A DNA stretch of 64,000 nt, from the NCBI GenBank assembly GCA_950097015.1, contig CATNEN010000025.1, positions 5,146,001 through 5,210,000 of the forward strand, given 5' to 3'. Source of the stretch: Macrostomum hystrix (Eukaryota; Animalia; Platyhelminthes). Below, one piece after another: positions 3,755 to 62,140 of this stretch (position 1 is its first letter; each line of letters opens with the position of its first letter). Below the pieces are notes generated by a model. The model made no database searches. It saw only the letters and a list, made by a program, of their open reading frames with translations, and was not told where the DNA came from. The position numbers and the translations under genes are program-made.

Positions 3755-4409
3755 TACATTACAGGACATGAAGGAAAGTGACAATCAGCAGGCCGATGAC
3801 CGATCGGTGGACCAACCAGAGGGCGAGGTCGGCGGCTTTGGCATAGCGAAGTCATTCCGCGAATTCGCGCAGTACACCACCGCGCACGGACTGGGTCGCT
3901 TCGCTGCTCAGACTACAGCATTGGGCCGTACCATATGGATACTATTTCTGCTAGCAACCAGAATGGGCAACAGCGCTGGATGACCCATCCAGGGCCTCCG
4001 GCCAAACTGAGTACCTCTAGCCCCGGCTGGAGGGAAAGGTGTCACCCTTTGACCTTAACAGGGTATGTGGCTTGTCCGCAATTTTCGTGCACCTGTGCGT
4101 GATCAGGTACCTCTGGCTACGGCCCTGAGGGACAGGTGTCACCCTTTGACCTTAACAGGGTTTGCGGCCAGCCCGCAGGCCTCGGCGCCGGCTCAATGGC
4201 ACCCTCCAATGTCCCAGTGTTGACCGTGCTGATGGACGCTTGGCCAGGGAGTAGTCTGGTCTCTTACGGTTCCTCCCGGTGGTCCTGGCATCCCACCCCG
4301 GGTTGTAACTTGTCTTTTTTGGCTGCCCCCGCTCAGTTTTGGGATCGCGGCTGAGCGGGTTATTCCTGCCTGTGTCTACAGGAAGCCCCTCTCTTCATTG
4401 CAGCTTTCA

Positions 4410-5957
4410 ATGGCTTCTAGCCCTTCAACTGCTCCGGCCGAGGACACCATGGTGCCTGAGGCCATACACGCTGCGGCGCCCGGGCTAGCTGGCCCCGCGA
4501 CCGCCACAAATGCCGCGCTGCCCAACTCGCGCGATGACCGGGGCGCTAAGCGCTCCACCACCTCTGGAGCGGCAAAACGCCGTAGGCGCATGCTGGCCCA
4601 CGGCACGTCGGCTCCATTGACCAAGGACCAGGCCCAGGCCAGAGGGGCCGAAGGGGCTCTGCCTAGGGCGGGGGCTGGGGCGGGGGGCCTTGTGCCTCCT
4701 GCCCAGGCTCCTGCACGGGGCGGAGCCCACGACGCCCCGAGGCCAGGGTCGCGGGCCAAGGAGGGCCCGGCGCCCATCCGGACGGCTGCCCGGCCCGAAG
4801 GAGAAGCGGAGGCGGAGGGCCCTGTGCCCACCGCCGACGCAGATCCCGAGGGTGGGGACGCCACCGGACAGGGCCCGGGACCACAAGCTACCTACGCCGC
4901 CATCGCACGTAGGCAACCTGCCGTCATCATCACCGGCAGAGACGGGAAAAGGCTGAGCAGCGAACAGCTCAGCGACATTTGCCGCAACATAGATGCTATG
5001 TTGTGGCAACTTCAACTGAAGGGCGAGCCCCTGGCGGTCGGCGCAAGCGCTACCAGGGAATCGTGCTTCGTCGTCTGGCCCGGCGATGCGGAATCGGGGC
5101 GGCGGCTCCTCGAGTTGCTGCCCACGCAGAGCTGGGCGGCTGGCCTCGAGTTCCTACGGGAGAACGAGCCACCAAAGACCAAGCGACACCGTATCTTCGT
5201 CCCGGCGAAAAGTGTCGTCACCAGCGCTGAGGACCTCCGCAGGGGCCTCATCGCGATGAACCGGGAGCTGCCGACAGCGGGCCTGATCGTGCACCGCACG
5301 ATCCTGCGCCCCGACGGCACCGGTTTCACCGCCATTCTGGGCCTGTCCGAGCAATGGACACGCCGCTACCCAGATGGCGCCAACATTTGCATTGGTCTGT
5401 GGAAGACCAAAATCTTCGCCTTCGAGGCGGATAAAACCCGAGGTCAGACCGGGCCCACCACCGTACCGGCCAATGAAGGGTCCTCGGACCCCAAGGCTGG
5501 GACTGGGGGCAGGGCCCAGTCGTCCCGCCAAAAAAGGCCAGAGCGTGCCATCGCTGGCAGCTCTGAGCGTCGCCCCGCGCGTGTCACAAAGCGCCGGGGC
5601 CTTCTCCAGCGGGCCTCCGAGGTGGTGCGAACCGCCAAGATGGCCCAGCTGCGCGCTGAGATGCGCGGTGGCCCACCGGGGCAGGCGCCGCAACCAAGGG
5701 CTACGGGGGAGGCCTCAGAGGTGCCCAGCTCCATCGAGCAGGGCCCTTCGAGCGCCCCTCCCACGGCCCAGGGAGCGGTGTCGGCTCCAGTTGAGGGCGA
5801 CTCTGGGCCTGGGCTCGGGGCCGGGGGCGGGGACTGGGCGGCTGACGCCGTCGAGTTCCCGTCTCCGGCTCGGGGCCTGGGCACGGAGGAGCCCATGGCT
5901 ACCGACATCGACCCGGAGGAGGAGGACCGCCTTCTGGCTGGGTCCCCCTCCAAGTAG
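4410..5957 (+). CDS. LINE ORF1 (gag-like position; low-complexity termini, no CCHC knuckle seen)
   Basis: First ATG at 4410. Open for about 515 codons and ends 12 nt before the ORF2 ATG. Confidence 0.8.
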   Translation: MASSPSTAPAEDTMVPEAIHAAAPGLAGPATATNAALPNSRDDRGAKRSTTSGAAKRRRRMLAHGTSAPLTKDQAQARGAEGALPRAGAGAGGLVPPAQAPARGGAHDAPRPGSRAKEGPAPIRTAARPEGEAEAEGPVPTADADPEGGDATGQGPGPQATYAAIARRQPAVIITGRDGKRLSSEQLSDICRNIDAMLWQLQLKGEPLAVGASATRESCFVVWPGDAESGRRLLELLPTQSWAAGLEFLRENEPPKTKRHRIFVPAKSVVTSAEDLRRGLIAMNRELPTAGLIVHRTILRPDGTGFTAILGLSEQWTRRYPDGANICIGLWKTKIFAFEADKTRGQTGPTTVPANEGSSDPKAGTGGRAQSSRQKRPERAIAGSSERRPARVTKRRGLLQRASEVVRTAKMAQLRAEMRGGPPGQAPQPRATGEASEVPSSIEQGPSSAPPTAQGAVSAPVEGDSGPGLGAGGGDWAADAVEFPSPARGLGTEEPMATDIDPEEEDRLLAGSPSK

Positions 5958-5969
5958 ACCTCTGCCTGC

Positions 5970-8900
5970 ATGATGATCCCCGGAATATCATGTCTGCAAG
6001 TTAACACCCAGCACTGCGTGGCAGCATCAGTCAATCTGATGCGCACGACAGAGCGCATGATGCCGGGCCTTGTACTTGTGCAGGAGCCCTGGCTATCAAA
6101 GAACAAGCCAAGCAACATTCCTGCTGGCTATGACTGCTTCTGCATGGCAGACTCTGTCCGCCCTAGATCACTGATCTATGCCGCAAAAGCCTTAAATGCG
6201 TGGATGAGACCCGATCTCTCTAACGGGGACATCTGCGTCATCCAATCTGCACACATTGTGCCTAACAAGTTGACCCTCGTGGCATCCGCCTACCTGGCAG
6301 GCGACGCCCCCGTGGTTAGCGATACCCTCGTCGCCCTCTGTGAATTCGCCAGGGCACGAAACTTCGAGCTGCTCCTCGCGGGAGATGTAAACTCGCATCA
6401 CACCCACTGGGGTAGCTCAAAAATCAATGACCGCGGCGAAGAGCTCCTGGCCTTCGTCAGCGGCACGCCTCTAAACTTCTGCAATGTGGGCAACACGCCC
6501 ACTTTCGACAATGGGCGGTGGGCTGAGGTGCTTGACGTCACCCTGGCCTCACCCGGCATCCTCCCAAGGGTGCTGGGGTGGGAGGTGTGGGAGACCGAAA
6601 GCTCGCTCTCGGACCACCGTTTCATCCGTTTCAACATCGGCACCCCCGATAAGAAGCAAAAGCCTATTTGGAGGCGTAATGTCAGAAATACCGACTGGCC
6701 CGCGTTCAGCCAAAAGCTGCATGAGGGCCTTCGGGATTCTGACCCCTCCATGGCCATGGAAACCACGCAGGACCTGGATGGAGTGGCTGCCCTGCTGGGC
6801 GGCGCCATCACAGAGGCCTACGAAATGGCTTGCCCGCTCAAAGCCTACAAAGGCAAAAAATCGGCCCCCTGGTGGAACCCCGAGCTCGGAGTCCTAAGAC
6901 GCCGAGCTAAGGCTCTCCAGAGGAAGCTGAAAACCTCGCACGACCCTGATGACAAAGAGGCCTATACTCGCGCCATCCACGAGTTTAAGGGCCGGGTCAG
7001 AAGGGCAAAAGCGGACAAGTGGCGACAATACTGCGAAGGGCTTGAGGGCTCGCGGCCCACGGCCCGCGTGGTAAAGGCGCTCACCAACGACCGCTTCTCC
7101 AAGCTCTCATCGATTAAAAAGCCGGACGGCTCGATCACTGAGCGCCCGGAGGAAACGCTCGAGCTTATGCTAGGGCATTTCTTCCCGAGTGTACCGGCGC
7201 ACTTCGGCCCAGACGACCACTCGCGTGGAGGTCAGGGCCTGGCTCAGTCACTCGTTACGAATGACCGCATCGTTCGCGCGGCTAAGTCATTCAATCCTTT
7301 TAAAGCACCTGGGCCAGATGGTATATATCCGGCCTTTCTGCATGAAGCGGTTAAAAATGGCCGCTTCCTCCATCTCCTCTGCAGACTTCTACGGGCCTGC
7401 ATCGTGCTGGGCTACGTACCAGCGCGGTGGCATGAAGCCCGGGTCGTCTTCATCCCGAAGCCCGCCAAAGGCGACTATCGCTCGGTCAAGTCTTATCGCC
7501 CGATAAGCTTGACTTCCACCTGCCTCAAGCTCATGGAAAGACTGGTGCTCTGGCGCCTTCTTACTGTAGAGCTAGGGCGGGCCCCGCTCTCACCAAACCA
7601 GCACGCCTTTCGGGCGGGCCGGTCCACGGAGAGCGCCCTCCACTGCATTGTGGAGACTCTCGAGAAGGCAGTGCTGGGCAGCGGTTTTGCCCTGGCTATT
7701 TTCCTTGATATTGAGGGGGCCTTCGATAACGTTATTTTCGAAGCCTTTGAGAAGGCCCTGGTTTCCAGGGCCACTCACCCCCACCTCGTCCGTTGGGTCA
7801 TGTACATGATCCGGAATCGCCACGTGGTGGCCCACCTCGAAGGCAGGGTGCTCTCGGCACCTGTCCTAAAAGGAGGGCCCCAAGGTGGCGTCCTCACCCC
7901 ACTGCTGTGGAATCTCGTCATGGATGAGCTGCTAAAAAGCACTCGGCCTGACCCAGTCCTGAAGGTGGGATATGCCGACGATGTGACCGCCATCTGCGCG
8001 GGCCCCTCGGCGGAAACCACCAGGGACCTCATTCAGGGCTTTATCAACAGGGCGGTGCGCTGGGCGGACCAATGCGGGCTCCGACTCTCTGAGTCCAAGA
8101 CCGTTGCGGTTATGTTTACCAGCAGGCTGCGCTGGACCATTGAGCCTCTGACTCTCTATGGCAAGAATATTGCCATGGAAAAGCAGGTCCGGTGCCTTGG
8201 TATCCTGCTAGACCATAGGCTTAACTGGACCCCGCACATTACCACAAAGGCCAAGAGGGCCCTGGCCATTCTGGCGCAAGTCAGGCGAGCCGTGGGCACC
8301 ACTTGGGGGCTAACCCCCAAAAACCTTTGGTGGATTTACACGGCGATCATTAGACCGTCAGTCGCTTACGCTGGCCTCATCTGGGCCAGTGCCATGAGCA
8401 TCCAGAAAAACCTGGAGGCGCTTTATAGGGTGCAGGGCAGAGCCTGTCGCATGACGCTGGGCGCCCCACCCTCCACTCCCTTTGAAGGCATGAACGCTTT
8501 CCTCAACGCTACACCCATTGACATTTTTGTTAAGGGGGAAGCGGCAAAGTCCACCCGTCGTCTCCTTGATGCGGGTGTATCCTTCCAGAATTCGCGAGCC
8601 TTCTCGAAGCGCTCCCTTCTGCCCCACTCTGACCTCTGCCTGAAAACTCTGGGCGAGTGCGGAGGGCTCACCATCCTTTCGGACGGGGCCCCGGCCACTT
8701 TACTCCGGAGCCACAGGTACAAAGTCAGCATCTTCCCTCGTAATGAGGTAAAGGACTGCTGGGATGACCCCGCAGTCCACTGTTACACTGACGGCTCCCT
8801 GATGAACGGTAAATCGGGATTCGGGGTGTGCGTCGCCTCGGGTGGCGAGGTCCTCTGGACCCACTCCCAACACTGTGGCAAGAGCTCAAGCGTTTTCCAA

Positions 8901-9674
8901 AACGAAATGCTCGCCATCAGCTTCTGTGCGGCTGAGCTGCGCCAGAGGCAGCTGGCTGGTCGGAGGATCTTTTTTCACTCCGACAGTCAAGCAGCCCTCA
9001 AGGCCCTCAGTCGCTGCACCTCTCGCTCCAGAACCACCTTGGACTGCAACACCCAGTTAAACGGTTTGGCGCAGTCTAACAAGGTGGAGCTGATGTGGAT
9101 CCCTGGGCACGCCGGGCTCACAGGGAATGAGATGGCGGACGAGCTTGCAAAGGCTGGAGCAGCCAGCTCCCTGATGGGCCCGGGCCCGGAATCCCCGATC
9201 CCCGCCTCCGTTGTCAACTCCAGCATCAACCACTGGATGGAGACCCAGCACCGGAGGAGGTGGTCCAGCACCCTGAACTGTCGCCAGTCCAGGGCTGCGG
9301 TGCCAACCCCCTCTAGTAACCTGCGTAAGGCCTTACTCAGGCTAAACCGCAGAGACCTGAGAGCAGTCACCATGGCCCTTTCGGGACATGGCTGCTTCAC
9401 CAGACACCGCTACCTCCAAGGCCACGTGCCTGAGGAAACGTGTCCTTTCTGCTGCTCCGGCCGTGAAAACGCCGAGCATTTCATTTGCCACTGCCCGGCC
9501 TTCACCCGGGCTAGGCTAAAACACCTCGGGCCGGCACCGACTCTTGCCGAAGCCTGCTCGCCCGAGAACATCCCTCAGCTCGCCCACTTCCTCCGGGATA
9601 CCGGCCGAGCTGATTTCTTCCCAGCCTATGGCGAGGAAGATCGCGCGGCGGAACCGACCGACGGACCACCCTGA
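5970..9674 (+). CDS. LINE ORF2: AP endonuclease, reverse transcriptase, RNase H, C-terminal CCHC finger
   Basis: Endonuclease motifs QEP, GDVNSHH, PTF, LDVTL, SDH. RT motifs [31 protein letters not shown]. RNase H motifs [34 protein letters not shown]-terminal CPFC-x8-H-x4-C. 1234 aa uninterrupted. Confidence 0.95.
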
Positions 9675-10100
9675 GCGGCACCGCCTCGCTGGAGGCCGTC
9701 TGGCTGCCAGGGGTTAGCGATATGGGCGGCAACAGCCGCCTCCTCGCTGCGTCCGTCATGGAGGCCCCCTGCCGCTAAGTCAAGTAAGTCAAGCTAGCAA
9801 CCTATGGTGGGTTCGCCTACCACCTCTACACCATTGTTGACCGGTGAGTTCTCCAGTCAACGAAGCCAACAAAGGGGAAGCGGCTTGACTAGTCGAGTAT
9901 AAATAACAAAGACTGTTTAAAAAAGTTTAGCTTGCACTTTTTGACTTATTGGACTGCCTGAATGTCTAGCTATTTTCGGTCGCGTTTTAGTTACGCATTT
10001 TAGGGTGCAATTGTTCGCAAAGTTGTACTGATGTGCAGTACTGATTGACTTACAGGGGTGTACAAAATGGAATTGCTGTTTAGGGAAAAAGTAGACCATC

Positions 10101-10860
10101 TGTTGTACTCGCGACTCCCCGGAGGGGTGCCCCTAGGAGGGTCAGATTACGCGGGCTCGTGCTGGCCTGCGTCAGGGCGCGAGTGTCCGCACGGGACCCT
10201 AAGTCTGGGGCGTCAGGATGCACCCAAGTGGCCGGCACACGCGTAGGGACGCTGTGATGTCGATCACCTTCAGCAGGGCGTCAGGGCGCACGAGCTGGCG
10301 TCTAAGTACAGCGGGTGTACAGTACAGGGTGACCCCTGGCTGACTACCTGGTCTAGTTCCCCCCTCCTTAGTCGACGTCAGGACACACGGACGGTCCCAG
10401 CTACAGCCCACCCGAAATAAAGGAGACAAGGCAGTGACTTACTTCACTTATAGCTCGCACTCGCGCGTGCAGTCAATTGCTTGCAGCTGACGTCTGTTTG
10501 CGTGGGGGACGGGTTATTGAAACGGTAGTCAGGCGTTGTAGAGCAAGAACAACAGCACGGGGCAGCCACCCGCCCCCGGCCGCGCCTATATAGGCCACGA
10601 CTCAACCGGGGCCGGGGCCCCCCACGCCCCACCCCCACCCCACCACCCCAGCCCAGCTACCCACCGGCCAATCACGGCGCAGCTGGGGGAGAGGCAGTCT
10701 GGGGCGAGGGCCACACAGGGCGGCCCAGCCAACCAGCGCGCAGACAACACAATGGCGGCTAAGCGGCATACACCGCTGAGCCTCTACCGCCAAAAACAAC
10801 TGCGTTATGCCGCGTGGGGGGGCGAGTGCACTTAAGCAGTGCCAGCGCACGTGCGCAACA
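10101..10860. mobile_element. Solo LTR (probably Gypsy-type)
   Basis: TGTTG...CAACA termini with a 4-bp TSD CATC (10097-10100, 10861-10864). 760 bp, GC-rich, non-coding, with TATA-like and AATAAA motifs. Confidence 0.65.
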
Positions 10861-11973
10861 CATCTCTAAAAATCGTTCATATATCGACTTTCTAGAGATG
10901 TGGCGAGTAGATTCTTGTTGCAGAAGGTGCGCACAACAAAAATTTTGCCCAGCACTAGAATCTCATGTGCCTTCGTTGCTCCGTTCAGGTGGAACAAAGT
11001 GTAGGGGAAATCCAGCCAGCTACAGTCTTTCGAAAGCCTTGTTTGGGACCATTGTTTGATTAGAACGAGCGTCTTGTCCTTTACATTCGCGAAATAACTC
11101 TGACAGGTTCTCCGGCAAGCCTATGTTGACCAGCCTCACCAACTCTCTGCCATACGAGTTTCCTGACGTGTACATCTGCCCGAAGCATCCAATCTCCATG
11201 AGCAAGGTCTACAAGCCATTCAACGAAGAGGACATTCCGAAACTGCGCGGACTGAAGAAGGAGTGCAATACCACCTGTCAGGCGCAGCTGAGCTACTTCT
11301 TGGCCTCCGCAACCGCCTTCAGCAATCCGATGTATGTATTCAGGAGTACAGTTTCAGCAGTGGAGACCGCCCTAATGAAAAGCCTCAACGACAAAAGCAC
11401 AGGTCGGCTTTATAAAGAACCCGTTTGATCACCTATGAAAAAAGAAAATGAGTAAAATTTATTTTTATTTAAGCGATAATGTACGAGTATAAGGGTGTAT
11501 TCAGTAGAGTTATCTGTTGATGTACAGCCAGTGGCACAGGCGCAGCCGCTATGGGGGTACATCTCCGTCCATGGGCCAGAACACCCACGAATTTCTTTGC
11601 GTTTCAGGACATGTGAATCAGTGCCGTTTCACCGTGGAAGGAGCCGAGTACGTTGGCAATAAGAGCACAGTGCCCGTGTTCAGCAACTCGTTGCTCATCT
11701 CTCTCGCGCCCGCCAATCTGTCTCAGCGGCCATACGTGAGTGAAGTCGCTTGCCTGCCGTGGAATGAGGCGGCCAGGAGGCTGAGAACGGCCGGAGTCGG
11801 AGCCATGGCGGACAGGATTCTTGCGCTGAACTTCTCCGAAGGAGACGCCAGGTGTCGGGCTCCAGCTGGTCTGTCGCTGACAGATTTCAAGAACTACACC
11901 TGTGAGCTGACACAGATATTTTGTGCCACTCGAATCCCTATTTTAGAACAAATTATCTTGTTTACAGCTGCAG

Positions 11974-12184
11974 TGGTTGTAGCCGGGTGGTTAGGGCGAC
12001 GGACTCGCGACTTGAAGATCGGGGTTCGATTTCCAGTGGAGCAATATGTGTACTTTAGCAAGAGCACAAAACTCTGAAATGCTTCAGTTCACCCAGCATT
12101 AGCTGGGGTAATTGAGGGTGGGTGTGGCGTTCCCCTGTCAATGGACTGAACAGCCGTACGCCGTACTGTCGGCAGCACATCTAG
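11974..12184 (+). mobile_element. SINE family A copy
   Basis: A box GTAGCCGGGTGGTTAG, B box GGTTCGATTTCC, body with internal deletion. Confidence 0.8.
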
Positions 12185-12991
12185 CACAATCGGTTCAACC
12201 AATTATTGATAGCAAATATCAAATTTATAATACCCAATCTTTAAGACATATTTGAAACCGCAAAACCAAATTTTAGCTCAGCTAATCAATGCGGAAAAAT
12301 CACCAGCTTGCTATCTAGACAGCGCTTCTAATAGGATGTTTAACTTTTCCTGCTTTGGTGGTCAGACTTCCAGCATGAACGTCCAGGTGTGCACGGAGTG
12401 CTGCTACAAGAATAATTACAGGTACTATGGCATGCAGTACTACGACTGTTTCTGCAGCAACAGCACTGATTCGGGGCGTGTGGTGGCGTCCAGCAATTGC
12501 GTCTACTCTTGCCCTGGCCAGGGTGACGAAAAACAAAACTGCGGCGGCGATGGCCTGTTCATGAGCGTGAAGCAAATCAGAAGCGCTGGTGAGTTCTCGA
12601 ATAAGCCGTCCAGCTTCTGATGGTGACTCACCATCAGACTGGCTCACCATGACTCACCATGGTGACTCACCTTCTGATAGTCGTCTTGATTTTCCTTTGT
12701 GTAATACCAAAGATAGCATTGCGAATTTAGCTACTTACCGTATCAAAAAATTTCCTTTGTACTTCCAAGGTAAGGTTATTTTTAGTCTTCGGAGTCCTTT
12801 TTAAAACAGTCCAAGCAAATATCTCATTTCATTCTCATTTCAGACAACTTCCCTATATTTCAACCCTATGGAAGTTTCCTTAGCAACTACCAGCTTGGCC
12901 CATATTGCTTCTATGACGATGCAGCGAATGGACTCGCGATTTCCTACTGCAACACTCCGTTCTGCTGTGAGCACTGTGTATCTATCTATCC

Positions 12992-13040
<49 letters not shown>

Positions 13041-13536
13041 GCATAAAATGTATGCTAAAATGTTATTACTTTACTCCGCAGCTATCGCAGGCGCATACAA
13101 CTGTATGGAAAGCGATAGCACTGGCTCGGCGAAGTACACAGGCAACCTGAGCACCACTGCCTCTGGCCGGAGCTGCATGTCGTGGGCTGATGTGAAGTCT
13201 GAAGTTGAAAGTGGACGACTCCGGCCGTCCAGCTCGTCTGTTATCCACTGGAGCTTGGAAACTATCAAGGGTGAGTTCACAAGCTGTTGGAGTACTCATA
13301 CGATATCCGATTTACGTCAAATGAGAAATCAGAAGAATAAAACTAGCCAAAACTTTCACGCAGATTATCGGGTTATCATACAAACAGCTGACTACGATGT
13401 CAGCAACAGTACAAATTACTGCCGGGCGGCTCACGTGCTTCTCGATGTGATGCACTACAATGGCAGTAGTGCGAATGCTGTCGCTTCAACGTACGTGTCT
13501 ATGATTTTAATTTCGAACTTGTAATGCTTTCAACAT

Positions 13537-13730
13537 GGGGTTAGTGACAGAGTGGTCTAAGGCCTTTGAGACTTGCACCAAGGTCCCTGAGCTCGATTGC
13601 GCGGCGATACCACATTCATTTGGGGGCTTTTGCTGTGCTATTCACACGCCCTCGAAGGCCCTCCGTGTGTCTTGGAGCGAGGAATGGGCGGCATTGCCTC
13701 TCTTTGGATGCTTGATTCACCAAATCGCCG
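13537..13730 (+). mobile_element. SINE family B copy, internally deleted
   Basis: tRNA-like head ...CACCAAGGTCCCTGAGCTCGATT..., CCACATTCATTTGGGGGCTT, degenerate 3' stem-loop. Confidence 0.65.
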
Positions 13731-14057
13731 AATGATTTGCGTGTGCTCACATCTTTCATGCAATTTGAATTTGCTCCACCATCCTAGGCGAAGTACTCTG
13801 GTGTACTCCACCGCACCCGGATGCTTCTATTTAAACGAAGTGGACAAAGTGGTCGCCTTTGAGCTGTGCGAGATTGCATCTTGCGGTAAGCAGCTACTTT
13901 TTATTCGTGAAAGCACTTAAGCCTAACTTGCTGCATGGCGTCATCGAACGAGTGTAATTACACTGTTAAAGTGTTTCCATGAGCTCAGATAAACCACAGA
14001 TTTTTGTCCACCTTGTTTAGCACAATGATAGAGTCCGTGGGATAAATGTATAATCTT

Positions 14058-14182
14058 TCCCACTTATTTCGGCTGCCAGGGTGTAAAGGCTCGAGGCGCA
14101 AATTTATTGACCGAGGCGAAGCCGAGGTCAATGAAATTCGCGCCGAGTGCCTTTGCACCCTAGACAGCCGAAATAAGTGGGA
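14058..14182. repeat. ~125-bp near-perfect palindrome
   Basis: Arms TCCCACTTATTTCGGCTG...ATTGACC and GGTCAAT...CAGCCGAAATAAGTGGGA around a GAGGCGAAGCCGA centre. Confidence 0.9.
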
Positions 14183-14356
14183 GAGATGGTATGTATCCCC
14201 CACTTGGCTGCCGACTTTCATTGCACTTTAAGTCTTCTGTTTCTTGCTACGCTCTGTCTGTAGTCTATGGTGAAAATCAAAATCCGAGAGGAGGGTAGAC
14301 GCTAAAAAAGACAGCCTTTATGCGAAAAAGACAGAACAGGACAGAATAGCAGACGC

Positions 14357-14860
14357 TTGTATATGTCTAGCCCTCGATTTGAAAGCTTGACTGAGGCCGA
14401 GGCGGAGGCCATGATTGGCGGCACGGTCCCTCCGAACACCGTAAAGAAATGCGAGTGGATGCTGTCTACTTTCAATGAATGGCACGCGTTTAAGAAGCAA
14501 GAATGGGCGACGAATGGTGGACCATCCATCATGGTTATCAAGGACATGGATGAGTTTGACAAGACGGACCTGAACTTTCTCCTGAAGTTGTTTATCCTGG
14601 AGGTCCGGACAAAACGGAACGAACGGTACTCGGCTGGTACCCTGAAGGACTTCTTCTCAATGCTACAATACCAAATGCGCAACGTGCATCGCAAGGACTG
14701 GTGCCTCTGGACGAATGTCGAGTTTGCCGAGTGCAGAAGAGCGTTGGACGCTGCTATGAAGTCTATCAACTGCTGAGGGCAAGGGCGTCGGGCTCAAGAA
14801 GTCTGACCCGGTGTCAAAGCCCATCGAAGATGACTGCTGGACGGAGGGTGTGTTTGGTTC
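14357..14860 (+). pseudogene. Fragment of a Crypton/ZMYM-DUF3504-like tyrosine recombinase N-terminal region, frameshifted
   Basis: PPNTVKK..W...FNEW...LNFLLKLFILEVR..K...Y...TL...LQY...F...RRALDAAMK. After a frameshift near 14770 it continues AEGKGVGLKKSDPV...EDDCWTEGVFG. Family recognised from memory. Confidence 0.6.
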
Positions 14861-14984
14861 CGAGCGTTCTCGTTTTGCACTTTCTTTGTTTATTTCCCCA
14901 GACGGTTGTGACTTATGTCTGTGGTAAAAGTTCTGTTTCGCGCGGGGGCGCGGGAAATAAATGATTTATTGCCCTAGGGCAAAT

Positions 14985-34814: not shown

Positions 34815-35058
<244 letters not shown>

Positions 35059-47181: not shown

Positions 47182-47479
47182 GTTTGTAGCCTAGTGTTTA
47201 GAGCGTCGGACTAACGACTTAAAAGTCGGGGGTTCGATTCCAGACTCCACTGAAACAATCTGTGACCTTTAGCAAGACACTTAACTCTGCATTGCTTCAG
47301 TTCACCCAGCTGTTAAATGGGTACCAGCATCAGCTGGGGTAATTGAGGGTGGGTGTGGCGTCCCACCAGTCCATGGACTGAACAGGTGTACGCAGCCTTC
47401 AGATGCTGTGCAAAATATCTGCGGCTGTCTGTCAGCAGCACATCTGGCCCAAATGGCGCTGGTGTAGTCAATTATTATT
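47182..47479 (+). mobile_element. SINE family A copy (near full length)
   Basis: A box, B box, CORE-like segment, (ATT)n tail. Confidence 0.85.
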
Positions 47480-49280: not shown

Positions 49281-49941
49281 TATACTCAACGGTTCTGGCC
49301 GAAGGTCAGATTTTTCCTATAAGATCTGATTTTATTTGTATTTTATACACCCCAATGCTGAATTTGCCCTGCGCCTGAGTGCGGCCTTGCCAGGCCTTCA
49401 AAATTTATCAGCACGTCATCCGAATGTGCCTGTATCTTCTCTGACTTCGGTGGTCACCGAACTTTATCTAGACGGAGCTGCTGGACCTTCAACAAGTGGA
49501 AGTTTAGTGTAGCCAAATATCGAGGCTTGGTCAGCGAAAGTAGAGAAATTCGTGTTTGACGGACTCCATAGCCGGCTGGAGGCACCCTGCTGACGATGCT
49601 GACGGCGTCGGGTTGGGGACAAATTTTTTGACGGACTAGGCGAGGGTCCTGTGGTTGAGCTTCGGCCAGCATTGAGGCTCGATCAGCGAAATGGGAGACA
49701 TTTGCATCAGGGTGTCTATAGTTGGCTGGTGCCACCTGTTGAAGGTTCAGCAGCTCTGTCTAGATAAAGGTAGGTGGCCACCGAAGACGGAGATGATGCA
49801 GGCACATTCGGATGCCGTGCTGATTAAGTTTGAAGGCCTGGCAAGGCCGCAATGAGGCGCGGTGCAAATTGTGTATCAGGTAGTATGAAATACACTAGCT
49901 CTTATGGGAAAATCTGACCTTCGGCGAGAGCTGTTGAATAT
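49281..49941. mobile_element. Foldback/MITE-like element with ~230-bp imperfect inverted arms (intron 11 of locus E)
   Basis: Left arm ...CCGAAGGTCAGATTTT...GCGGCCTTGCCAGGCCTTCAAA...CCGAATGTGCCTG...CTTCAACA mirrors the right arm at ~49735-49941. Confidence 0.75.
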
Positions 49942-51619
49942 CTCGACAGTCTGAATGGCTGGCGACTTGATTATTGTTTCAGAAGATGCGCAGCAAAAAG
50001 TTGGGCAGTGTTCTGAGCTTCCTGTGCTTGCATTGCTCCGTTCGGGTACAGCACAAATATTTGTCAGGTGGTTGGGGATTACCCCTTGGTACGAACACGG
50101 GCAGCAAAATGGCTTGGTAGTCCAACTGTTAAGTATAAAATATTTTTTTCACAGCTAGAAAATTTTTTACCATCCACCAGGAGCCCCATGAACAGAAAGT
50201 TGACATTCAAAGTCAGCACTCTGGAGGACTGTCTTAACGAGTTCGTGCTGCGAAGATTCACCGAAACCTGTCGCTGCCTTCCGACTTTTCTTCCGATCCC
50301 GGAGCAGCTGTTCCTTGCGTATCCCATCTGCTTCAACTCCACCGACGCCGATTACTTGTACGCCACTGACCGTTGCTACCTTAATCAGATTGAGCAAGTT
50401 AAAGCTTACCGTATCCAAGCGAGAGAGCACTGCAAAGCTCCATGTGAGACTCGAACTTACACAATCAGCCACACGACCTTTCCCTGGCCGAATCTCCGCA
50501 GTGAGTCCGCCGAAATATTTCTGTACAATTTAGCCAAGGCATTCGGCTACCCCAGTAAAGTTCAATCGCTCCGAGGATCAGGTGTTATATACTCGGCCTA
50601 CCTCATGCAAAGAAACCTTTTTTTGGACCCGGAAGCGAGCATTACGTCCTACGATTACCAGCTACTCACCCTGCAGGACCAGCTTGCGAGGGTGTCTGTC
50701 TCCGCTGCTCAGATGTTCGGCGAAGAGGTTGCTGAAGAAGAAGCCTACCCCGTCAAGAATCTCTTGGCTGACATGGGCGGTCAGTCCACCTTTAATTTAT
50801 TACCTATCATTGCCTAATATTATTTATGTACACAGCTAGGATTGATTGTTTGATGCGTTCTAAGTTATTTTTCCGATTTTATTTATGCCTATCGCTCTCA
50901 CCATTACAGGAATTATGGGTCTTTGGTGCGGCGTCTCAATCTTGACTGTGTGCGAGCTGCTGGAGCTGGTGCTGTTTGTGATCCTGAAGCTGATGCACTT
51001 CTTTCGCATTAGAAAGCAAACTTTAGGCGCCAATAAGGGCACTCGAAATGTTTATGTGATTTCCGAGAATGCTTCCACAGTCGTTGTGGAGAACAGCCTT
51101 GCTGTCGCGAATAACGGAGCTCCTGAAAGCGAGACAGAGGCTGTGTACGACATTCCTGGGTGTCATTCGGTATCGTCGGAGGGCGTCAACGAGGGTCCGA
51201 TTGAAGTCAGCAGCTTTTGACTTATTCTGCTAAATCTTATGCTCCAAATGGTGATAGCTGCTTATCTGTGACTGCTGTTTTTGGATCATTTCCAACTGCG
51301 CCTATCAGCTATCGAATTGTTGATAGATACTCGTATGTTATGTGGCTATGCATGCCAAGTAATAGTACAGTAATCTAGAGTTCGGCTGTACATACACCAT
51401 ATATATTAATTATCCAAACATTTATCTTCTCTTTATTTTGGGCCCTCAGCTAATTTTTAGATGTGAATTTTTTCAGCTTTAATTTAAACAAAAATAGATT
51501 CAACAGAAAATGTAGCATAAGTGCATAATAAAAATGTAACAAAAACAGGAAGATAAATAATTTTTTTATTGCCTTTTCAATGACAATTAGTTGCGTTTCT
51601 TTTTCAAATTCAATTACTA

Positions 51620-53805: not shown

Positions 53806-56800
53806 ATGGAGACAAATGACGAAATGTACAATGAGCCGATGCAAAATCCTACACCTAGCGGCGACGGTGACCGTAGCGGCGTTGGAAAGGCTGGGGAGTT
53901 CAGCCTCTCGGGCTCCTTCTGGGACTTCTGCGGCTATACTACTGCGCACGGCTTGGGCAGACTCGAGGCCCAGAGCAGGGCTTTTGGTCGCACCGTCTGG
54001 ATAGCATTTCTTCTGGTGACTTACGGCGGATTCAGCTATCACCTTTATACCTTAATTGATAGGTAAGTTTCTCGAATATTAAATTTGAAGAATCCATTTC
54101 TTGACTTACTTGACTTAGCTGCAGGGTTGTCTTGGACACAGCGGGGAGGCGAGGATCGCCCATACCGACCTTGGGTCTTAGAGGGCGACAGAAGGCAGCG
54201 CCAGATCCGCAGTCCACCTGCATACCCTGTTAAGGTCAAATGGTGTCACCTTTCCCCCCAGCCGTAGCCAGAGGTACCTGATCACGCGCAGGTGCACGAC
54301 GCTCCGGACTGGCCGCATGCCCTGTTGAGGTCGAAGGGTGACACCTTTCCCTCAGAGCCGTAGCCAGAGGTACCTGATCACGCACAGGAGCACGAAAGAA
54401 TCCATTTGAGTTTAATATATCATCCTCATTGCAAGGTTACTACTGCTTCTGCTTCTGCTTCTGAAAAGTTTGCAGAATATAACAAACACTCAACAGTTTC
54501 TAAGAATTGCTAAGTATTGCCTAACAGCATTCTGCCCATCAAATTTCAAGTAGCCCGAAAGGATACAGTGATTTTCCACGCTAAATCTCACAAATACGAG
54601 CTAGCCAACGAAAGTCATTCACGATTTTAAAAGGGTGAATGAATATGACTGTCATGTCAAAGATTTCAGTTTAGGACTTTAACTCTTAGACAAAGCCTCC
54701 ATTTTCTAGCTCTTTCCCGCTATTACGAGTATGTCCCATAGTCTGTCACACAGAAACCATATCACTTTTGAGGAAATAGAAATATACTCATTTTCTCACG
54801 CACTAGAACCAATAAAATTTACTGATCGCGTTGCCGCCATTTTCGAACTCAGGTACACGAGCACACCTCTGCTGACGAGTCTGACAACCACTCTGCCCTA
54901 CGAGTTCCCCGATGTGTATATCTGTCCTGCCAATCTAATGTCGATGAGCAAACTTTACAACCGTTTCAACGCGACAACAGATAAGCCACGACTTCGTGGA
55001 TTAAAGAAGGACTGCAACCTGACCTGCCAGATCGCCCTAACTAAATTCGATATTAACAGACGCACCGATAATTTGGACTTTAGCACTCCTGCCTGGGCAC
55101 TTGAGGACGCCGTAAATGCAGCAGAGCAATCAATTATCGCTTGGTTTCAACGGAACACGTATGGTGCGCATCAGACTCGGGATTTTATAATTTTGTTTTA
55201 TAGGCCTTGAATAAACGTGTCTCTCTTGATTTGCGACAGAAGTATCCAGTAAAGAGTGCGAATCCGTACAGTCGTGATGTCATGATTTAATGACGCATTT
55301 TTTCACAGAAAAGCTTTATCACTTACGGTTAACGATCGCTTTCAAACATTTCTCAGGCCAGTTCAATACCTGCCGATTCACTCTGACTGGCAGAGAGTAC
55401 ACTGGCAACAAGAGCACTGTGCCAGTGTACACAGAGAGCGCACAGGTGCAGCTGCAAGCCAGCAACAGTGGCAGCAGCGTTCCTGCTGCGCAGCCGTACG
55501 CAAGGGAGGCGCCATGCATGGCGTGGAAACAAGCGGCCAGGCTGCTGATGGAGAAAGAGTTGACCTCACTGGCCAATCAGATTCTGAATTTGAACTTCTC
55601 TGAGGGGGACGCCAGGTGCCGCCAGACGGCTGGACTTGCGTTTCGGAAAATTCTAGAAAATAACGACGGTAATAGCTGAGCCATTGTACTTGCTTTTGCT
55701 TCATGTAATAATTCATTACACCTGCCCCAATCAGGCCAGATATGCTGCCGACAGCGCAGCCGCAGCTATTGCGCCGCGCATCTGAAGGCTGCGTACGGCT
55801 GTTCAGTCCATGGACTGGGGGGGGCGCCACACCCACACCACCCCAATTACCCCAATTGAGTCTGGTTCCCAATTAATGGCTGGGCGAACTGCAGTAATTT
55901 AGAGTAAACTTTTTTCTTCAAGGCCACAAATTGTTCTAGTGGAGTCGGGAATCGAACCCCCGACCTTCAAGTCGTGAGTCCGATGCTCTAAACACTAGGC
56001 TGCAACCCCACCCCCTAATGAAATCTTAGTGACTTAGTGACAAAAAACGGCTACTACTAGTTGGCTTCCAAACATTTTATTTGAATTTTCAATCATAGTT
56101 TTAGTATGTGCACCTGGTACAATTTTGGTAGGGACTTTCAGTGATTATCCAGGTTTTCTGCTTCCGTGGAAAATCAGAGCGGCCTAACTGCCTGTCACAT
56201 AGCTTTTAAGTGAATGGCCCTGATATTTACGTTCATCGTGAATGTAGTGTATTCAGGCAATTTTTCAATGATTTGCTCAATGAATCACATGTCCGCATTT
56301 AACAGTTAACACAGCTATTTGAAGACGGTTAAAGCAAGTCAAGCAAAGCTGAACAAATATTTCACTAGCCTTGCAAGAAAACTTAAACTTTCATACGACG
56401 ACTTCCTTTTTTCATGCCATTCTCCCGATGAGTGCGCAATACGGAGCGTTTAAAGCTCTTAGAATTACACAAGTGATTAGCAAAGTGATTTTTTAAGCTG
56501 CAGTTCAATCTTTAGGAACGTACTGACGAGCTATATAGAAAAAAACGGACAAAACAAAAAAATCACAATGATCCTACAATTTTACCCGCTCTTTGAAAAC
56601 TCGTCATGAAACAAACTCTTATGAAACATTTAGATCTCCAAGTTGTTGTTCCACTAAAGTCCGACATTGGCTGCTACTTTGAGAACCAGAGCGACAGTCA
56701 CTACTCATTCAAGTGCTTCGCTTTGACCGTGATGACCCTGACTGTTGACACGTGCGCTGAGTGCTGCTACAATCGCAACTTCACCCACATCGCCGTCAGG

Positions 56801-59800
56801 AACTCCTCCTGCTACTGCGGCGGATCTCCTAGAGCCTCCCAAGTACTGGATAGCGACGACTGCGACTGGCCCTGCCCGGGGGACGTGAACCAGTTGTGCG
56901 GCGGAGACGACTCTGCTGTCAGTGTTTATAAAATCAGAGACGTTGGTGAGCTATGACTGCGTATTTGATCCACTTTGTTTTCCTATTCAATGGAGTACAG
57001 AATCCCCAGTGAAATCAACGGCAGCCATTCAGCTGTAACTTTTGCCCCACCCTAAGCAAACTTGGACGAAAAAAAAATATATGTGCCCTACGGGAGCAAC
57101 CTGACTCGTTTCCTGGAAGGACCGATCTGCTTCTACGATGACCCGGCACATGGACTCGCAGTTTCACCTTGCAACATTCCATTTTGTCGTGAGTAGCTGG
57201 ATTATTTGATTGTTGAAAATCAGTTTTTACTTATGCGAGTACCAGCTCGTGTTTCTACCTCACATATATCTGGGGGATTGGGCAGATAGTGGGTCAGATG
57301 TGCAGCCGACAGCACAGCCGCAGCTATTGCGCGGCGTATCTGAAGGCTGCGTAATGCTGTTCAGTCCATGGACTAGGTGGACGCCAACACCCACCCTCAA
57401 TTACCCCAGCCAATGCTACGTTGATCCGTTTAACAGCTAGGTGAACTGAAGCAATGTAGAGTGAATTGTTTTGCTAAAGGACACAAATTATCCCAGTGGA
57501 GTTGGGAATCGAACCCCCCGTCGTGAGTCGACGCTTTAACCACTAGGGCTAGGCTACAACCCTCTTATTAAGCATTAATGTAGAAAAGTAATAATACTCG
57601 TATAAAGTCACTTCGAAAATTCCTGATACAATATGCATTATACTACGAGTTGGCAATAGTTTCTATGCCCTTGTCTGCAGCCGCACCTCAGGAGTACGAT
57701 TGCACGGTCAGTGGCGCGAGTGACGAGGACGAAATGCTCGAGCCGGCCCGCTACAGCGGTCGGCTGAATGTCACCGCGTCAGGTAGGCGGTGCCTGGTCT
57801 GGTCAGACGTCAAACGTCGCGTGGAGAACGGCTCGTTGAGACTGCCGGAGATCCTGCACGACTGGGATTCGACATTTGCCAGTTTGTCCGCTCTTTATAT
57901 TTGTTGTTTATATCTGCTTGCTATCACTCATATCATGAGCCAGAGCCAAAGATGGTTATAAAAGTCATGATTGTGTCCGTAAAAACGTTTCGGTTCCATC
58001 CGTCTGTCTATGCCCCATAAGCTTCCTCACTCTCGATAGCGAAACATTTCCTGCAAAAAATAATAATATATATTTGGTTACGCCTGCCCTGATTAGGCCA
58101 GATGTGCAGCCGCAGCTATTGCACGGCGCATCTGAAAGTTGCGTACAGCTATTCAGTCCATGGACTAGTGGGACGCCACACCCACCCTCTATTACCCCCA
58201 ACTAATGCTGGTACCCATTTAACAGCTGGGTGAACTGAAGCATTGCACAGTTTTAGTTTCTTGCAAAAGACCACAAATTGTTCTAGTCGAGTCGGGAATC
58301 GAACCCCCAGCCTTCAAGTCGTGAGTCCGACGCTCTAAGAGCTAGTCTACAACCACTAGGGAACAGTGAACTGTTCGTTATTAACTGTCAGCAGAAAGCA
58401 GACAGAAGTTCTTGTCTCACGTGAGTACATAGGCATTTTAAAGCTAAGCGCAGGAATGTTATATTCTGGTTTGGTGATAACGACTGTTATATCCGCTAAT
58501 GCCTGGAGCAATATTAACACAGCTCCTAAAAAGAGAATTCGCACTGTGTACATAAATTTCTTTGACGAAAATTCTGCTTGTTCTAATTTGTGTTCTCATT
58601 GGTCTTCGTATGCAGATTATTTCGCCATATTTGCTAGCTACTGATACTAAAGTAATTCTCTTATTTATCTTTCATTTGAAAGCAACAATGAAGACTCAGA
58701 ATCCTGGGATGCCTCTAAGTGGATGCATACCAAACATTATTTGTCACTAAACTATGCTTTCAGACAAAAGACATTCTCTGGCTTGGCTACACAACTCATT
58801 TCAGCCAAGACATTAGTGCAAATGATTCTGCAAACTCCGGACTACGAGCTGAGCAATGAGACCAATTATTGCCGATCTGTTCACGCTTTGTCTGACACCT
58901 GGTATCAGGTGACGCCTGGAAACAACGGATCAAACGCCTACATGTGAGTTAGCCTGGCTTGAGCATACCCATTCTCAGAACACGCTTGCCTACTTCCAAA
59001 TTAGAGCGTACAGTACTAAATTAGCATAAAATGTACTTCAATTCGGTAGCTTGCTGTGCGCTCTCCCCTTTCAGTCGAGACACGGTTGCCGAGTCCATAG
59101 TACCCGGCTGCTTCTACCTGAACGAGGCTGAGAATGTCATCCTCTTCGAAGCCTGCAGCGTGCAGCCCTGTTGTGAGTTTAAAGCTATTTCAAAAGACTT
59201 TCAGAAGGCATTTGCTGTATGCCGCATCCGCCACTGACGCCGCATCCGTGATGGTGGAGTTTGATCGGCTGATATAGAAAAATCCAGCAATTCGATACAA
59301 ATTTCAGACAAGGTCAGTCCGGCCGTGACGGGCTCGGTGAGGGCCCGAGTCGGCAGCGCGCCGCTGGCCCGACAGTTCAGCAACGAGCTGGGAGACGGTC
59401 TAATTCGGTGCGAGTTCAACAGACAGTCGTGCGGCCCTGCGAACTTCCAATCGGTACTGCAGCCGGAGCTGGGCGTCTGTCAAAGATTTATGAAAGAGCC
59501 GCTGCTGCGCGGCCTCAGCGCCAACGAAGTAGCCGAGGCTGTCCTTCAGGTGCAGCTGTTCAGCGACGCCACCGACTCGCGCGGAGCCGTGTTCCGCCAG
59601 TCCGATAAGCTCGCCAACGCCATCCTCAGCGGCGGCGGTAGCGGCAGCACCGCAATCAAGGTGCGCCTAGTAATTGCTCGGGCATTCGAATAAGTTAATT
59701 CGCTGGATGTGAAAACTAGGGTATTTTAAGTATTGCGTTTCGTTGACTTACTTGGCATAGCGGGGAGGTGGGGTCCCCCATTCCGCTATCTGATTTAGAC

Positions 59801-62140
59801 CCCAGACCTGTGATGGTGCAGGGCCGGTCTGGGTCATCCGCCGCTCCGTCCTGCAGCGTTGTCTTCCGTGGGACAAGAACATTCCCGTCTTCGTTCGTCT
59901 TGTCGCCCGGAGGAACTGGACGAGCCGTGGGAAGCTGTCGGGCTGGCAGACCTCGTTGATAGACGGGTTAGGCCCGAGGTTGTATTTAAATGCGAGGGCA
60001 GTGACAGACAAAGTGCTTAGCATCTTTGTAGTCATTCTCGCAGAAGGGGCAGAGCTTACTATTAAGGGCGCCCCGTATGAAGCAGTGGCTGGCCCTGGCC
60101 CTAGCGAGGGCGCGGAAATCCTCCCGTTTTGGGTTCAGAAGGATATTCCTGAGCCTGCAAGACGGGTGCGGAACTGTGGCAGGCCATTGTAGGCAGTTCT
60201 TGGTGCCCATTGCGTTTTGTGACTATAAGCCATGCTTACATTGTAATGCCTGTATAATGCCTTCTTCAATTGAACAAAAACTGAGAAGAAAGTAGGAGGA
60301 AACTAATAAAATAGCTATAATTTACAGATTAAAATATATAGACTGCTACTTATCTATCTTGGTTGGTCAAGGAGGTTGTAGCCTTGTGATTAGAGCGTTG
60401 GACTCACGACTTGAAGGTCGGGGGTTCGATTCCCGACTCCACTGGAGCAACTTGTGGCCTTTTGCAAGAAACATAACTCTGCATTGATTCTGTTTACCCT
60501 GATGTTAAATTGGTACCAGCATAAGCTGGGGCAATTGGGGGTGGGTGTGGCGTCCTTCCATTCCATGGACTGAACAGCCGTTCGAAGCCTTCAGATGCGC
60601 CGCGCAATAGCTGCGGCTGTGCTGTCGCCTGCACATCTGGCCCGATTTGGGCAGGTGCAATCAATTATTAGTATAATAATTATCTATTGTAATGATCTAT
60701 CTTGCAACACTCAGGTAATAGTAACTCCAGAGGGAACATACCCATGGGCAGCCAATGCTATCGACGCCATGCCAGCGCAGCACACGAAGCTGAGACTTCG
60801 CTATGACAGAACAGTCAGGTACTCCAAGCCACCAGCCTCTGAATGCAGTCGTGAAGCTCGGGCCGTAACATACTTTTTCGAATCGTGGACTCCCAAAGGC
60901 CTGGGTGATGATGAAATGTAAGTGGATTGGTTAATTAGGACCGATTGTGACAATGGGAAGCACAAACTGCTTTATTGCTTTATCCCTTTTTCCGTGCTCT
61001 TACACAGAACCTACATGGACACTCTGTTCATCGAACCAATAGACGCAGAAAATTGGACGAACAAAATCGATTTGGTGAGAGACCTGCTGGGAAACTATAG
61101 CAAAATCAGGTGAGATGCTTCACGGTCGACTCAAAATTTAATAGACCTAAAATTGAAACTTCAAGTCCGCTCTGTATATTTTTACTGCAACATTATGTAG
61201 AGGACCCGTCCAGCAGAAAATAACGTTCAAAACGAGCACTCTGGAAGACTGCCTCAACGAGTTTGTGCTGCACAGATTCGCCGAGAACTGCCGCTGCCTG
61301 CCGACATTCCTACCGATTCCCGAGCAGCTGTTCATGGCTCATCCCATCTGTTTTAATTCCACCGACATCGAGGACCTGTACAAAACTGACCAGTGCTACA
61401 TCAGGCAGCTGGGAATGCTGAAGAGTTACCGCAGCCAGGCTCGTATCAGCTGCAAGTCTCCGTGTGAGACTCGTGAGTTAAAAGTGAGTCAGGTTGAGTA
61501 CGCTTGGCCCAGCTTGCGTCGTGAGACGTCGCTGAGCTTCCTTGCCAGTCTGGCCAGTCGATACGGCTACCCGAACAGCGTGAGTCTGTTCCGCGGTCCC
61601 GTCAGCCTGTACTCCGCCTACCTGAGCGCACTGGTCCTGACGCGAACATCTGCCAGCACCACCAAGCTGACGGCCAACCTGACGAACTTTGATTACGAGC
61701 TGAGCATCCTTCGCGACCGGCTGGCCATGGTGTCGATTTCCGCATCGGAGCCGCTGGGCGAGGAGAAGATCGAGGACGAGGCCTACCCGGTGAAGAACCT
61801 TCTAGCCGACATGGGAGGTTGGCGGATAAAAATTGTACTTCATTTTCAGTCCTTAGCAGTCGCTATCATGCACATATGTCTCATTATTTATTGCCCAGTG
61901 GCATTCATTTAATAATGCTCAAATTCTATGTTACTGCTCATAAAACTCATCCAAGGCATCCTGGGTCTGTGGTGCGGTATTTCCATCCTAACAGTTTGCG
62001 AGCTTCTAGAACTGGGCTTGCGTATCGTTATCCGGACGCGACATCTTATCTCATTGGGCTGGATGCGTCGACACAGCGGTGCGCCTGGCAATGAGACGGT
62101 TTTAGTTCGCGAATTCAACTCATCAGCGAGCGGGCAGTGA
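53806..62140 (+). CDS. DEG/ENaC channel locus F, apparently intact, the most divergent paralogue
   Basis: Approximate exons: 53806-54062, 54852-55163, 55358-55668, 56634-56947 (WSC: IGCYF...CAECC...CYCG...CDWPCPG...CGG), 57057-57188, 57681-57881, 58805-58943, 59075-59172, 59309-59660, 60715-60917, 61009-61110, 61201-61818, 61956-62140. Intron phases are consistent and no stop was seen. TM2 reads LLADMGGILGLWCGIS. Confidence 0.83.
54100..54395 (-). mobile_element. Short bipartite non-autonomous derivative of the LINE family (5' UTR repeats fused to 3' tail)
   Basis: 12-bp TSD AAGAATCCATTT (54088-54099, 54396-54407). Contains about two copies of the 96-bp 5' UTR unit seen at 4011-4200. Ends in ...GCTAAGTCAAGTAAGTCAAG like the full-length element. 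Confidence 0.85.
55706..56008 (-). mobile_element. SINE family A copy
   Basis: Reverse complement of the family consensus from A box to tail. Confidence 0.85.
57270..57561 (-). mobile_element. SINE family A copy
   Basis: Reverse complement of the family consensus. Confidence 0.82.
58060..58354 (-). mobile_element. SINE family A copy
   Basis: Reverse complement of the family consensus. Confidence 0.82.
59743..60208 (-). mobile_element. 5'-truncated LINE related to the 3960-9792 element
   Basis: Minus-strand remnant LRNILL...CPFC....KHFVCHCPRI matches the ORF2 C-terminus. 3' end CCGCTATGCCAAGTAAGTCAA. 11-bp TSD ATTGCGTTT(C/T)G at 59732-59742 and 60209-60219. Confidence 0.85.
60371..60682 (+). 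mobile_element. SINE family A copy
   Basis: A box, B box, body, AT-rich tail. Confidence 0.85.

Follow-up and report, generated by a model that had tools for sequence, protein, structure and literature searches.

In other members of the DEG/ENaC channel family, the finger region of the extracellular domain receives peptide ligands, protease cuts and toxins, and in FaNaC the ligand site lies in an enlarged finger. Here we describe a stretch of 64,000 nucleotides from the flatworm Macrostomum hystrix (assembly GCA_950097015.1, contig CATNEN010000025.1, positions 5,146,001 to 5,210,000 of the forward strand), referred to below as the window, with positions counted from its first letter. The window contains a tandem array of DEG/ENaC genes whose products very probably combine the normal channel parts with a glycosylated finger module, some 390 residues long and rich in disulphides, made up of a kringle-like unit (unit 1) with a WSC domain nested in it, followed by another kringle-like unit (unit 2). 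We refer to this module, and to the exons that encode it, as the cassette.

Several described systems share a part of this design. A loose precedent, to be taken only as an analogue, is provided by the EGAS subunits of C. elegans, which are DEG/ENaC subunits with an extra cysteine-rich extracellular module; they too are uncharacterised, and gave no currents in oocytes. Because the EGAS channels carry EGF, an added module on a DEG/ENaC channel is not unprecedented, but here the module is of kringle and WSC type and Pfam detected EGF in none of the exons or homologues. The pairing of a kringle with a WSC domain is known from Kremen, where the two serve as a protein-docking surface. The ectodomain of Kremen1/2 (PDB 5FWS-5FWV) differs from the present module in that its domains lie side by side, together with a CUB domain and a membrane anchor of its own, whereas here the WSC domain is nested in a kringle-like unit, another such unit follows, Pfam finds no CUB domain and the whole is inserted in a channel. 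WSC domains in general bind carbohydrate. In yeast Wsc1 the WSC domain, deposited as a 'mechanosensor domain' (title of PDB 7PZ2), caps a fungal sensor of cell-wall stress that has a single-pass stalk and, unlike the present proteins, no channel. Among DEG/ENaC proteins of solved structure FaNaC (PDB 7YVB, 8ON7) is the closest by sequence (E 8e-12), although its finger has no independently folded module, and peptides elicited no response from three M. lignano channels whose branch adjoins that of FaNaC (PMC9234716). Finally, MEC-4/MEC-10 and shear-sensing ENaC are thought to be coupled to the extracellular matrix, a tether model reviewed together with the requirement of matrix proteins for MEC-4 localisation (PMC10148893). 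In those channels the tether consists of the separate proteins MEC-1, MEC-5 as well as MEC-9, or of N-glycans, whereas at this locus a candidate binding module lies within the subunit.

Gene copies were located by comparing stop-to-stop segments of the + strand all against all, after which tblastn served to map the exon peptides of a single copy back onto the sequence. Splice sites were picked by frame, consensus and conservation between copies, and were required to be consistent in phase. The window, a piece of animal DNA whose G+C content is about 44% but higher in a block at 4-10 kb, was found to hold a head-to-tail array on the + strand of five 13-exon DEG/ENaC genes (copies A, C, D, E and F) and one fragment (copy B); the coordinates are given in Table 1. 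A preliminary description of this DNA had proposed that channel exons and cassette belong to a single reading frame, and the open, phase-consistent gene models bear this out. It had also placed exons 3-8, with 1173 nt and about 391 aa in copy C, between FPDVYICP and LVDCxF. We find the same length in copy C (297+312+123+207+136+98 nt, 391 aa), where exon 2 carries the FPDVYICP and exon 9 the LVDCTF that flank the cassette. Introns 2, 3, 4, 5, 6 and 8 are in phase 1 and intron 7 is in phase 2, so that exons 3, 4, 5 and 6 singly, the pair 7+8 and the entire cassette are all symmetrical 1-1 units. Copy C has GC donors at introns 1 (27275, CAG/GCAAGA) and 7 (30637, CAG/GCGAGA). The homologous donor of intron 7 is GT in all four other copies, and that of intron 1 is GT in D, E and F, with CGG/GTGAGT after its inserted element in A.

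Each subunit would possess the normal parts of the family, namely a cytoplasmic N-terminus with the HG motif, a first transmembrane segment (TM1), the strand with FPDVYICP, the core of the ectodomain and a second transmembrane segment (TM2) with a GxS filter. Pfam and fold analyses were done on single window exons and on homologues from Macrostomum lignano, and spliced window proteins were analysed by script. The Pfam ASC profile (PF00858) matched exons 1, 2, 9 and 12 of copy C, exon 12 with 43.1 bits (cut-off 23.6) and the other three with 19.6-22.5 bits each, and matched the full-length M. lignano relative PAA82974.1 (P0006) with 131 bits. The motifs YTTAHGLGR, which contains HG, and FPDVYICP are present in all five copies, and the TM2 motif GG(I)(L/M)GLW(S/C)G(V/I)S with its GxS filter, which continues as GGILGLWxGxS...E, persists in copies A, C, E and F, whereas the pseudogene D has a changed version. 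In the M. lignano relatives the ASC match ends at profile position ~129 just before the cassette and restarts at ~132-142 just after it. Residues 10-97 of P0006 align to FaNaC 66-155, from TM1 to the first strands, and residues 580-613 to FaNaC 207-240, the CxFxxxxC strand; the cassette occupies residues 163-548, with predicted helices on both flanks. Because the gap in the ASC profile and the segments aligned to FaNaC bracket the cassette, we conclude that it is a clean insert in the finger region, as had been suggested.

The WSC domain, first recognised from the bare sequence, is real. Exon 4 of copy C scored 41.1 bits against Pfam WSC (PF01822, cut-off 27.8), and the M. lignano relatives P0006 and P0013 scored 39.1 and 40.2 bits. 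P0006 also matched the Wsc1 WSC sequence (7PZ2) with E 2e-6. In the model of another M. lignano relative, P0021, which is 62% identical to copy C over exon 4, this region has the WSC fold when compared by VIA-align to yeast Wsc1 (Z 11.0), the WSC of glyoxal oxidase (Z 10.5) and that of Kremen (Z 9.5-9.7), at a local predicted local distance difference test score (pLDDT) of 50-69. The best fold match for the exon 4 domain was the Wsc1 WSC (PDB 7PZ2), over 94/97 residues at a root-mean-square deviation of 3.4.

The assignment of the two remaining units as kringles, also made in the preliminary description, holds in part. No unit scored above the Pfam cut-off for Kringle (PF00051), the scores being 15.7-21.7 bits against 34.3. 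For exon 6, Kringle is nevertheless the only or the best Pfam hit in all five loci (15.7-19.3 bits, 18.8 in C), always at profile positions 4-33, and it is the top and almost sole Pfam match for 4/5 of the M. lignano unit 2 parts as well. A profile of unit 2 built from five M. lignano relatives found kringle 2 of tPA among the sequences of solved structures (E 6e-4), and nearly all of its 44 matches there were kringle-bearing proteins. The fold of unit 2 in the P0021 model gave modest scores by VIA-align with the kringles of factor XII (Z 5.6), prethrombin (5.3) and HGF (4.8). Unit 2 is thus placed by profile, by per-exon Pfam results in the five loci and by fold, and the motif string reported earlier for the kringles corresponds letter for letter to unit 2 of copy C. 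Unit 1 is tied to kringles only through unit 2, and the structure model is poor in the unit 1 region: a profile of exon 3 found no match among solved structures, exon 5 alone had no hit in Pfam, and with the WSC exon excised unit 1 aligned to unit 2 over the full length with the six cysteines matched (hhalign probability 80-86%, P 1.6e-6). Both units have six cysteines in kringle spacing with the flanking motifs Y.G, C..W, NYCR, CFY and C.IP.C, and these cysteines and motifs do not vary among the copies in the window or among the lineages of M. lignano, with the exception of copy E, in which unit 1 is without Cys5 and Cys6.

The alignment also changes the order of the domains. What had been described as kringle, WSC and kringle in succession does contain a WSC domain and two kringle-like units, but the WSC domain is nested inside unit 1, in its Cys3-Cys4 loop, and unit 2 comes after, so that the order is N-terminal kringle part, WSC, C-terminal kringle part and kringle (hhalign). 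Each of the five cassettes has 20-22 cysteines on a plan of 6 (unit 1), 10 (WSC) and 6 (unit 2). An AlphaFold model of the P0021 cassette, made from 7 alignment rows, had a mean pLDDT of 51.5 and gave usable matches for the WSC domain and unit 2 only. A model of full-length P0006 from 11 rows (mean pLDDT 43.2) was too poor to use, and an alignment of full-length M. lignano proteins with single window exons smeared the fragments and was used neither as a profile nor as folding input. Because the models are poor, it is on sequence alignment that we base both the placing of the WSC domain inside unit 1 and the location of the arm formed by the cassette. A Foldseek search with the P0021 cassette model returned Kremen (kringle-WSC-CUB) first, with E 8e-4, then yeast Wsc1, HGF NK2 and plasminogen; Kremen, named earlier for its joint kringle and WSC domains, is the best structural match to the cassette.

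Synonymous sites are saturated among the copies (synonymous divergence, Ks, about 2), and all exons are conserved nonetheless. The ratio of nonsynonymous to synonymous divergence (Ka/Ks) is 0.12-0.23 in the cassette and 0.14-0.28 in the core; purifying selection acts on both alike. When spliced copy C was compared by phmmer to P0006, the two matched end to end (residues 30-1035 versus 12-1022, E 1e-195). The GenBank annotation of M. lignano was built from RNA-seq-guided transcripts and TransDecoder open reading frames (ORFs) (PMC5730564), and therefore the cassette and the channel exons stand on one mRNA in M. lignano. A chance origin of the exon chain was ruled out by the conservation at saturated Ks, the low Ka/Ks of the cassette and the M. 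lignano proteins. It might also be supposed that the gene model is an artefact, with exons 3-8 forming a separate nested gene or being skipped in every transcript, given that the whole cassette (1173 nt) and most of its single units can be skipped in frame. This is hardly credible, however, for exon 3 itself contains neither a start codon nor a signal peptide, an in-frame stop lies just upstream of it, the phases fit those of exons 2 and 9, the ASC domain and the cassette share one ORF in the transcript-derived M. lignano proteins, and the cassette is under purifying selection. On these same grounds the nested-gene reading was rejected.

Full-length relatives of the same design were found only in Macrostomum lignano, as transcript-derived, unnamed and uncharacterised database entries. 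When exon 12 was searched exhaustively by HMMER against 1.84 billion representatives, 12 matches were obtained, every one from M. lignano, and word-based searches of a set of 5.8 billion proteins, in which P0006, P0021 and a profile of the cassette (A4) served as queries, likewise recovered nothing but M. lignano proteins with Pfam ASC+WSC. Neither the word-based searches nor the exon 12 search found a stand-alone donor of the cassette, and searches of this kind cannot exclude other taxa. In a tree, the window copies and P0021, their closest public relative, form one clade with support of 99/100, in which P0021 is nested. The full cassette also occurs outside this clade, in no fewer than three further M. 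lignano lineages (P0006; P0018; P0020/P0003) whose identity to the clade is about 33%, and P0011 has at least kringle-like unit 2 beside ASC. The presence of the cassette in several diverged M. lignano lineages indicates that the insertion is old within the lineage. The 13 exon blocks recur on M. lignano contig NIVC01000342.1, where another cassette-bearing paralogue (26189-27520) begins about 6.4 kb after exon 13 of P0021; the GenBank model of P0021 ends at exon 11, and exons 12 and 13 lie downstream (18136-19765).

In the literature, we found no paper that joins 'WSC domain' with ENaC and none with kringle, WSC and flatworm; the 29 papers with kringle and ENaC dealt with plasmin or irrelevant topics, the gene identifiers of the M. 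lignano relatives were absent from searchable papers, and two published DEG/ENaC phylogenies, one of them that in PMC9234716, do not mention kringle or WSC domains. The claim of novelty thus stands insofar as no paper describes the design, but uncharacterised M. lignano entries with Pfam ASC+WSC were already public: the design is present but unremarked in public databases. As for its origin, Patthy's rule holds that symmetrical 1-1 phase is the pattern expected of shuffled extracellular modules. Because phase 1 is shared by the outer and most of the inner introns of the cassette, and one 1-1 exon encodes the entire WSC domain, the module probably arrived by exon shuffling, and its arrival would predate the split of the subfamily into at least four lineages, now about 33% identical.

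We interpret the window as a birth-and-death tandem array of one flatworm-lineage DEG/ENaC subfamily. Five loci are full-length by exon content, as first described, but not by integrity, and only C and F are cleanly intact. Copy A has been hit by a long interspersed nuclear element (LINE) in exon 1. Copy D has three in-frame stops, all within conserved blocks, and the 5' part of its exon 10 is also damaged. In exon 5 of copy E (46745-46769) a 1-nt deletion shifts the last seven codons, by which Cys5 and Cys6 of unit 1 are lost, and the frame is restored by a GTAAAT donor 4 nt 3' of the homologous donor; with two kringle cysteines gone, this copy may be on its way out. Copy F could also start at an upstream ATG (53656), giving 1120 aa, although the start at Met51 agrees better with the other copies. 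Copies C and D are 90% identical in DNA over exon 2 (27397-27692 versus 37245-37540) and 95% over exon 12 (32261-32856 versus 41896-42491), as against 37-78% over the remaining exons and diverged flanking introns, and by these identities exons 2 and 12 look like patches of gene conversion. The LINE in A, the stops in D, the frameshift in E and the fragment B could be taken together to mean that the array is a decaying relic without current function. We consider this very improbable, since C and F are fully open and keep all 22 cassette cysteines despite saturated synonymous sites, and the family has been kept in several M. lignano lineages.

The window also contains mobile elements and repeats. 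The LINE in copy A is flanked by a 10-bp target-site duplication, GCTAGCAACC, at 3950-3959 and 9793-9802, and has a G+C content of 59-67%, compared with 44% for the genome, and a short repeated 3' tail. Its ORF1 encodes 519 aa and its ORF2 1234 aa with endonuclease, reverse transcriptase and RNase H domains; because both are intact, the insertion looks recent. Intron 8 of the same copy (15427-18361) holds a P-element/THAP9-like transposase ORF of 662 aa, whose domains are THAP, TNP-like RNase H and GTP-binding insertion; after it comes an ORF of 244 aa with no Pfam hit. The exon-9-like part of copy B contains a perfect tandem repeat (74-bp x 3.1, at 24045-24275). An interspersed repeat of about 300 bp occurs in at least 10 places, mainly in introns, and also in M. 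lignano NIVC01000342.1 at 74-81% identity. Minisatellites were seen in intron 6 of copy C (21-bp x 24, 29917-30439), just upstream of exon 13 of copy D (18-bp x 12, 42609-42826) and upstream of copy F (18-bp x 21, 53098-53464), and a (TATC)61 microsatellite lies between C and D (34816-35058).

Table 1. Positions of gene copies, cassettes, copy C exons and dispersed elements in the window.
Feature	Position	Strand	Description
Copy A	3768..21548	+	13 exons, all open, ~1054 aa; exon 1 split by LINE
Copy A cassette exons	11608-13885	+	
Copy B	23200..25377	+	fragment: pieces of exons 7, 9, 10, 13; frameshift; 74-bp triplication (tblastn)
Copy C	27042..33399	+	intact, 13 exons, open spliced coding sequence of 1099 aa, all acceptors AG
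C exon 2	27397..27692	+	post-TM1 strand FPDVYICP and first finger helices; matches Pfam ASC at 46-86 of the profile
C exon 3 (phase 1-1)	27795..28091	+	N-terminal part of unit 1, Cys1-Cys3, CRFT..G.EYTGN..C..WN..RCRAP.G (alignment)
C exon 4 (phase 1-1, 312 nt)	28259..28570	+	entire WSC domain with 10 Cys, lying within unit 1
C exon 5 (phase 1-1)	29062..29184	+	C-terminal part of unit 1, GPYCFY..SYCNIPFC, Cys4-Cys6; aligns to unit 2 end PGCFY..C.I..C
C exons 6-8	29276-29482, 30501-30636, 30721-30818	+	kringle-like unit 2
C exons 9-12	31286..32856	+	remaining ectodomain from LVDCTF on; Pfam ASC profile 136-252, 307-436
C exon 13	33068..33399	+	TM2 (ILGLWSGVSVLTVCELIEL, GxS filter) and C-terminal tail
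Copy D	36683..43082	+	pseudogene; in-frame stops 38157 (TAG), 38825 (TAA), 41237 (TAG)
Copy D cassette	38119-40800	+	
Copy E	44759..51220	+	coding sequence of 1091 aa, open only with exon 5 donor 4 nt downstream (46769)
Copy E cassette	45629-47948	+	
Copy F	53806..62140	+	intact, most divergent copy; 1070 aa from Met51
Copy F cassette	55357-59172	+	
Full-length LINE in copy A exon 1	3960..9792	+	5.8 kb; ORF1 4398-5957, ORF2 5970-9674
~300-bp repeat, examples	30927-31198, 47181-47479, 51620-51910, 60371-60677		
~300-bp repeat, minus strand	55706-56009, 57291-57562, 58060-58354	-	

The best overall explanation, to which we would give about an even chance of being right, is that these genes form a flatworm-lineage DEG/ENaC subfamily in which the finger cassette acts as a docking or tether arm. 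Its functional part, an arm that feeds into gating, is the reading that we prefer, though at somewhat less than an even chance. In the trimer, three arms would stand out from the ectodomain at its top and side and would dock the channel to a glycan-rich partner, perhaps matrix, mucus or another cell surface; pull on an arm, or its occupancy, would be transmitted to the finger and hence to the gate. The subunit would then contain, as its arm, the kind of extracellular tether that has been proposed for MEC-4 and ENaC. In its most specific form, a self-tethered mechanosensitive DEG/ENaC in which the kringle(WSC)-kringle arm anchors each finger directly to glycan-rich matrix, the reading is attractive but unlikely to hold.

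Some of the observations weigh against the docking or tether arm. The kringle scores fall under the Pfam cut-off, both structure models are poor (mean pLDDT 51 and 43) and three of the five copies (A, D and E) are damaged. Every cassette unit can be skipped in frame and, because the units are symmetrical, isoforms without the WSC domain or without the arm may exist. Kringles bind lysine in a pocket formed by the acidic pair of NPD and the aromatic residues of GPWC. In the alignments these motifs are replaced, by NYCRAA and PGCFY in unit 2 and by RCRAP.G and GPYCFY in unit 1, and therefore a classical lysine-binding role for the cassette is unlikely.

The main rival, which is compatible with a tether, is the chemosensory reading, one of the possibilities raised in the preliminary description. 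On this reading the arm would bind soluble glycans or proteins of food, mates or microbes and so gate the pore directly, and the array would be a diversifying receptor repertoire. Tandem arrays with pseudogenes and transposon hits, such as we see here, are typical of chemoreceptor families. Moreover, the WSC domain and unit 2 evolve fastest (45-48% identity within the clade versus 56% for the core), and the finger is the peptide-binding region of FaNaC, the closest solved relative by sequence. The Ka/Ks of the cassette equals that of the core, however, with no sign of positive selection at such resolution, and gating by glycans or proteins is pure inference; on balance we hold a chemoreceptor to be rather unlikely. 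Perhaps the arm does not gate at all and serves instead in assembly, clustering, trafficking or localisation, as MEC-1/5/9 do for MEC-4, or acts as a protease-controlled lid like the finger tracts of ENaC. Yeast Wsc1 is clustered through its WSC domains, which would fit such a role. So would the need for matrix proteins to localise MEC-4 (PMC10148893) and the regulation of ENaC through finger inserts, as a passage of PMC13488063 has it. None of our observations counts directly against a non-gating arm, which we judge to be quite unlikely all the same.

The finger is where the stimuli of DEG/ENaC channels have diversified, to include protons, peptides, proteases and shear. A ready-made binding module placed there, related to the Kremen ectodomain and to a yeast cell-wall stress sensor, is a natural experiment on how binding or pull from outside is passed to the gate. 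The locus would also be a clean example of exon shuffling in two layers, with a WSC exon in a kringle and a kringle in a channel. The relatives in M. lignano allow transgenesis and RNA interference (RNAi), so that deletion, swap or binding tests of the cassette are feasible. If the arm did prove to tether the channel to matrix, the long-postulated gating tether would belong to the channel polypeptide itself, and the tether model would be testable by domain deletion in a transgenic, RNAi-amenable flatworm.

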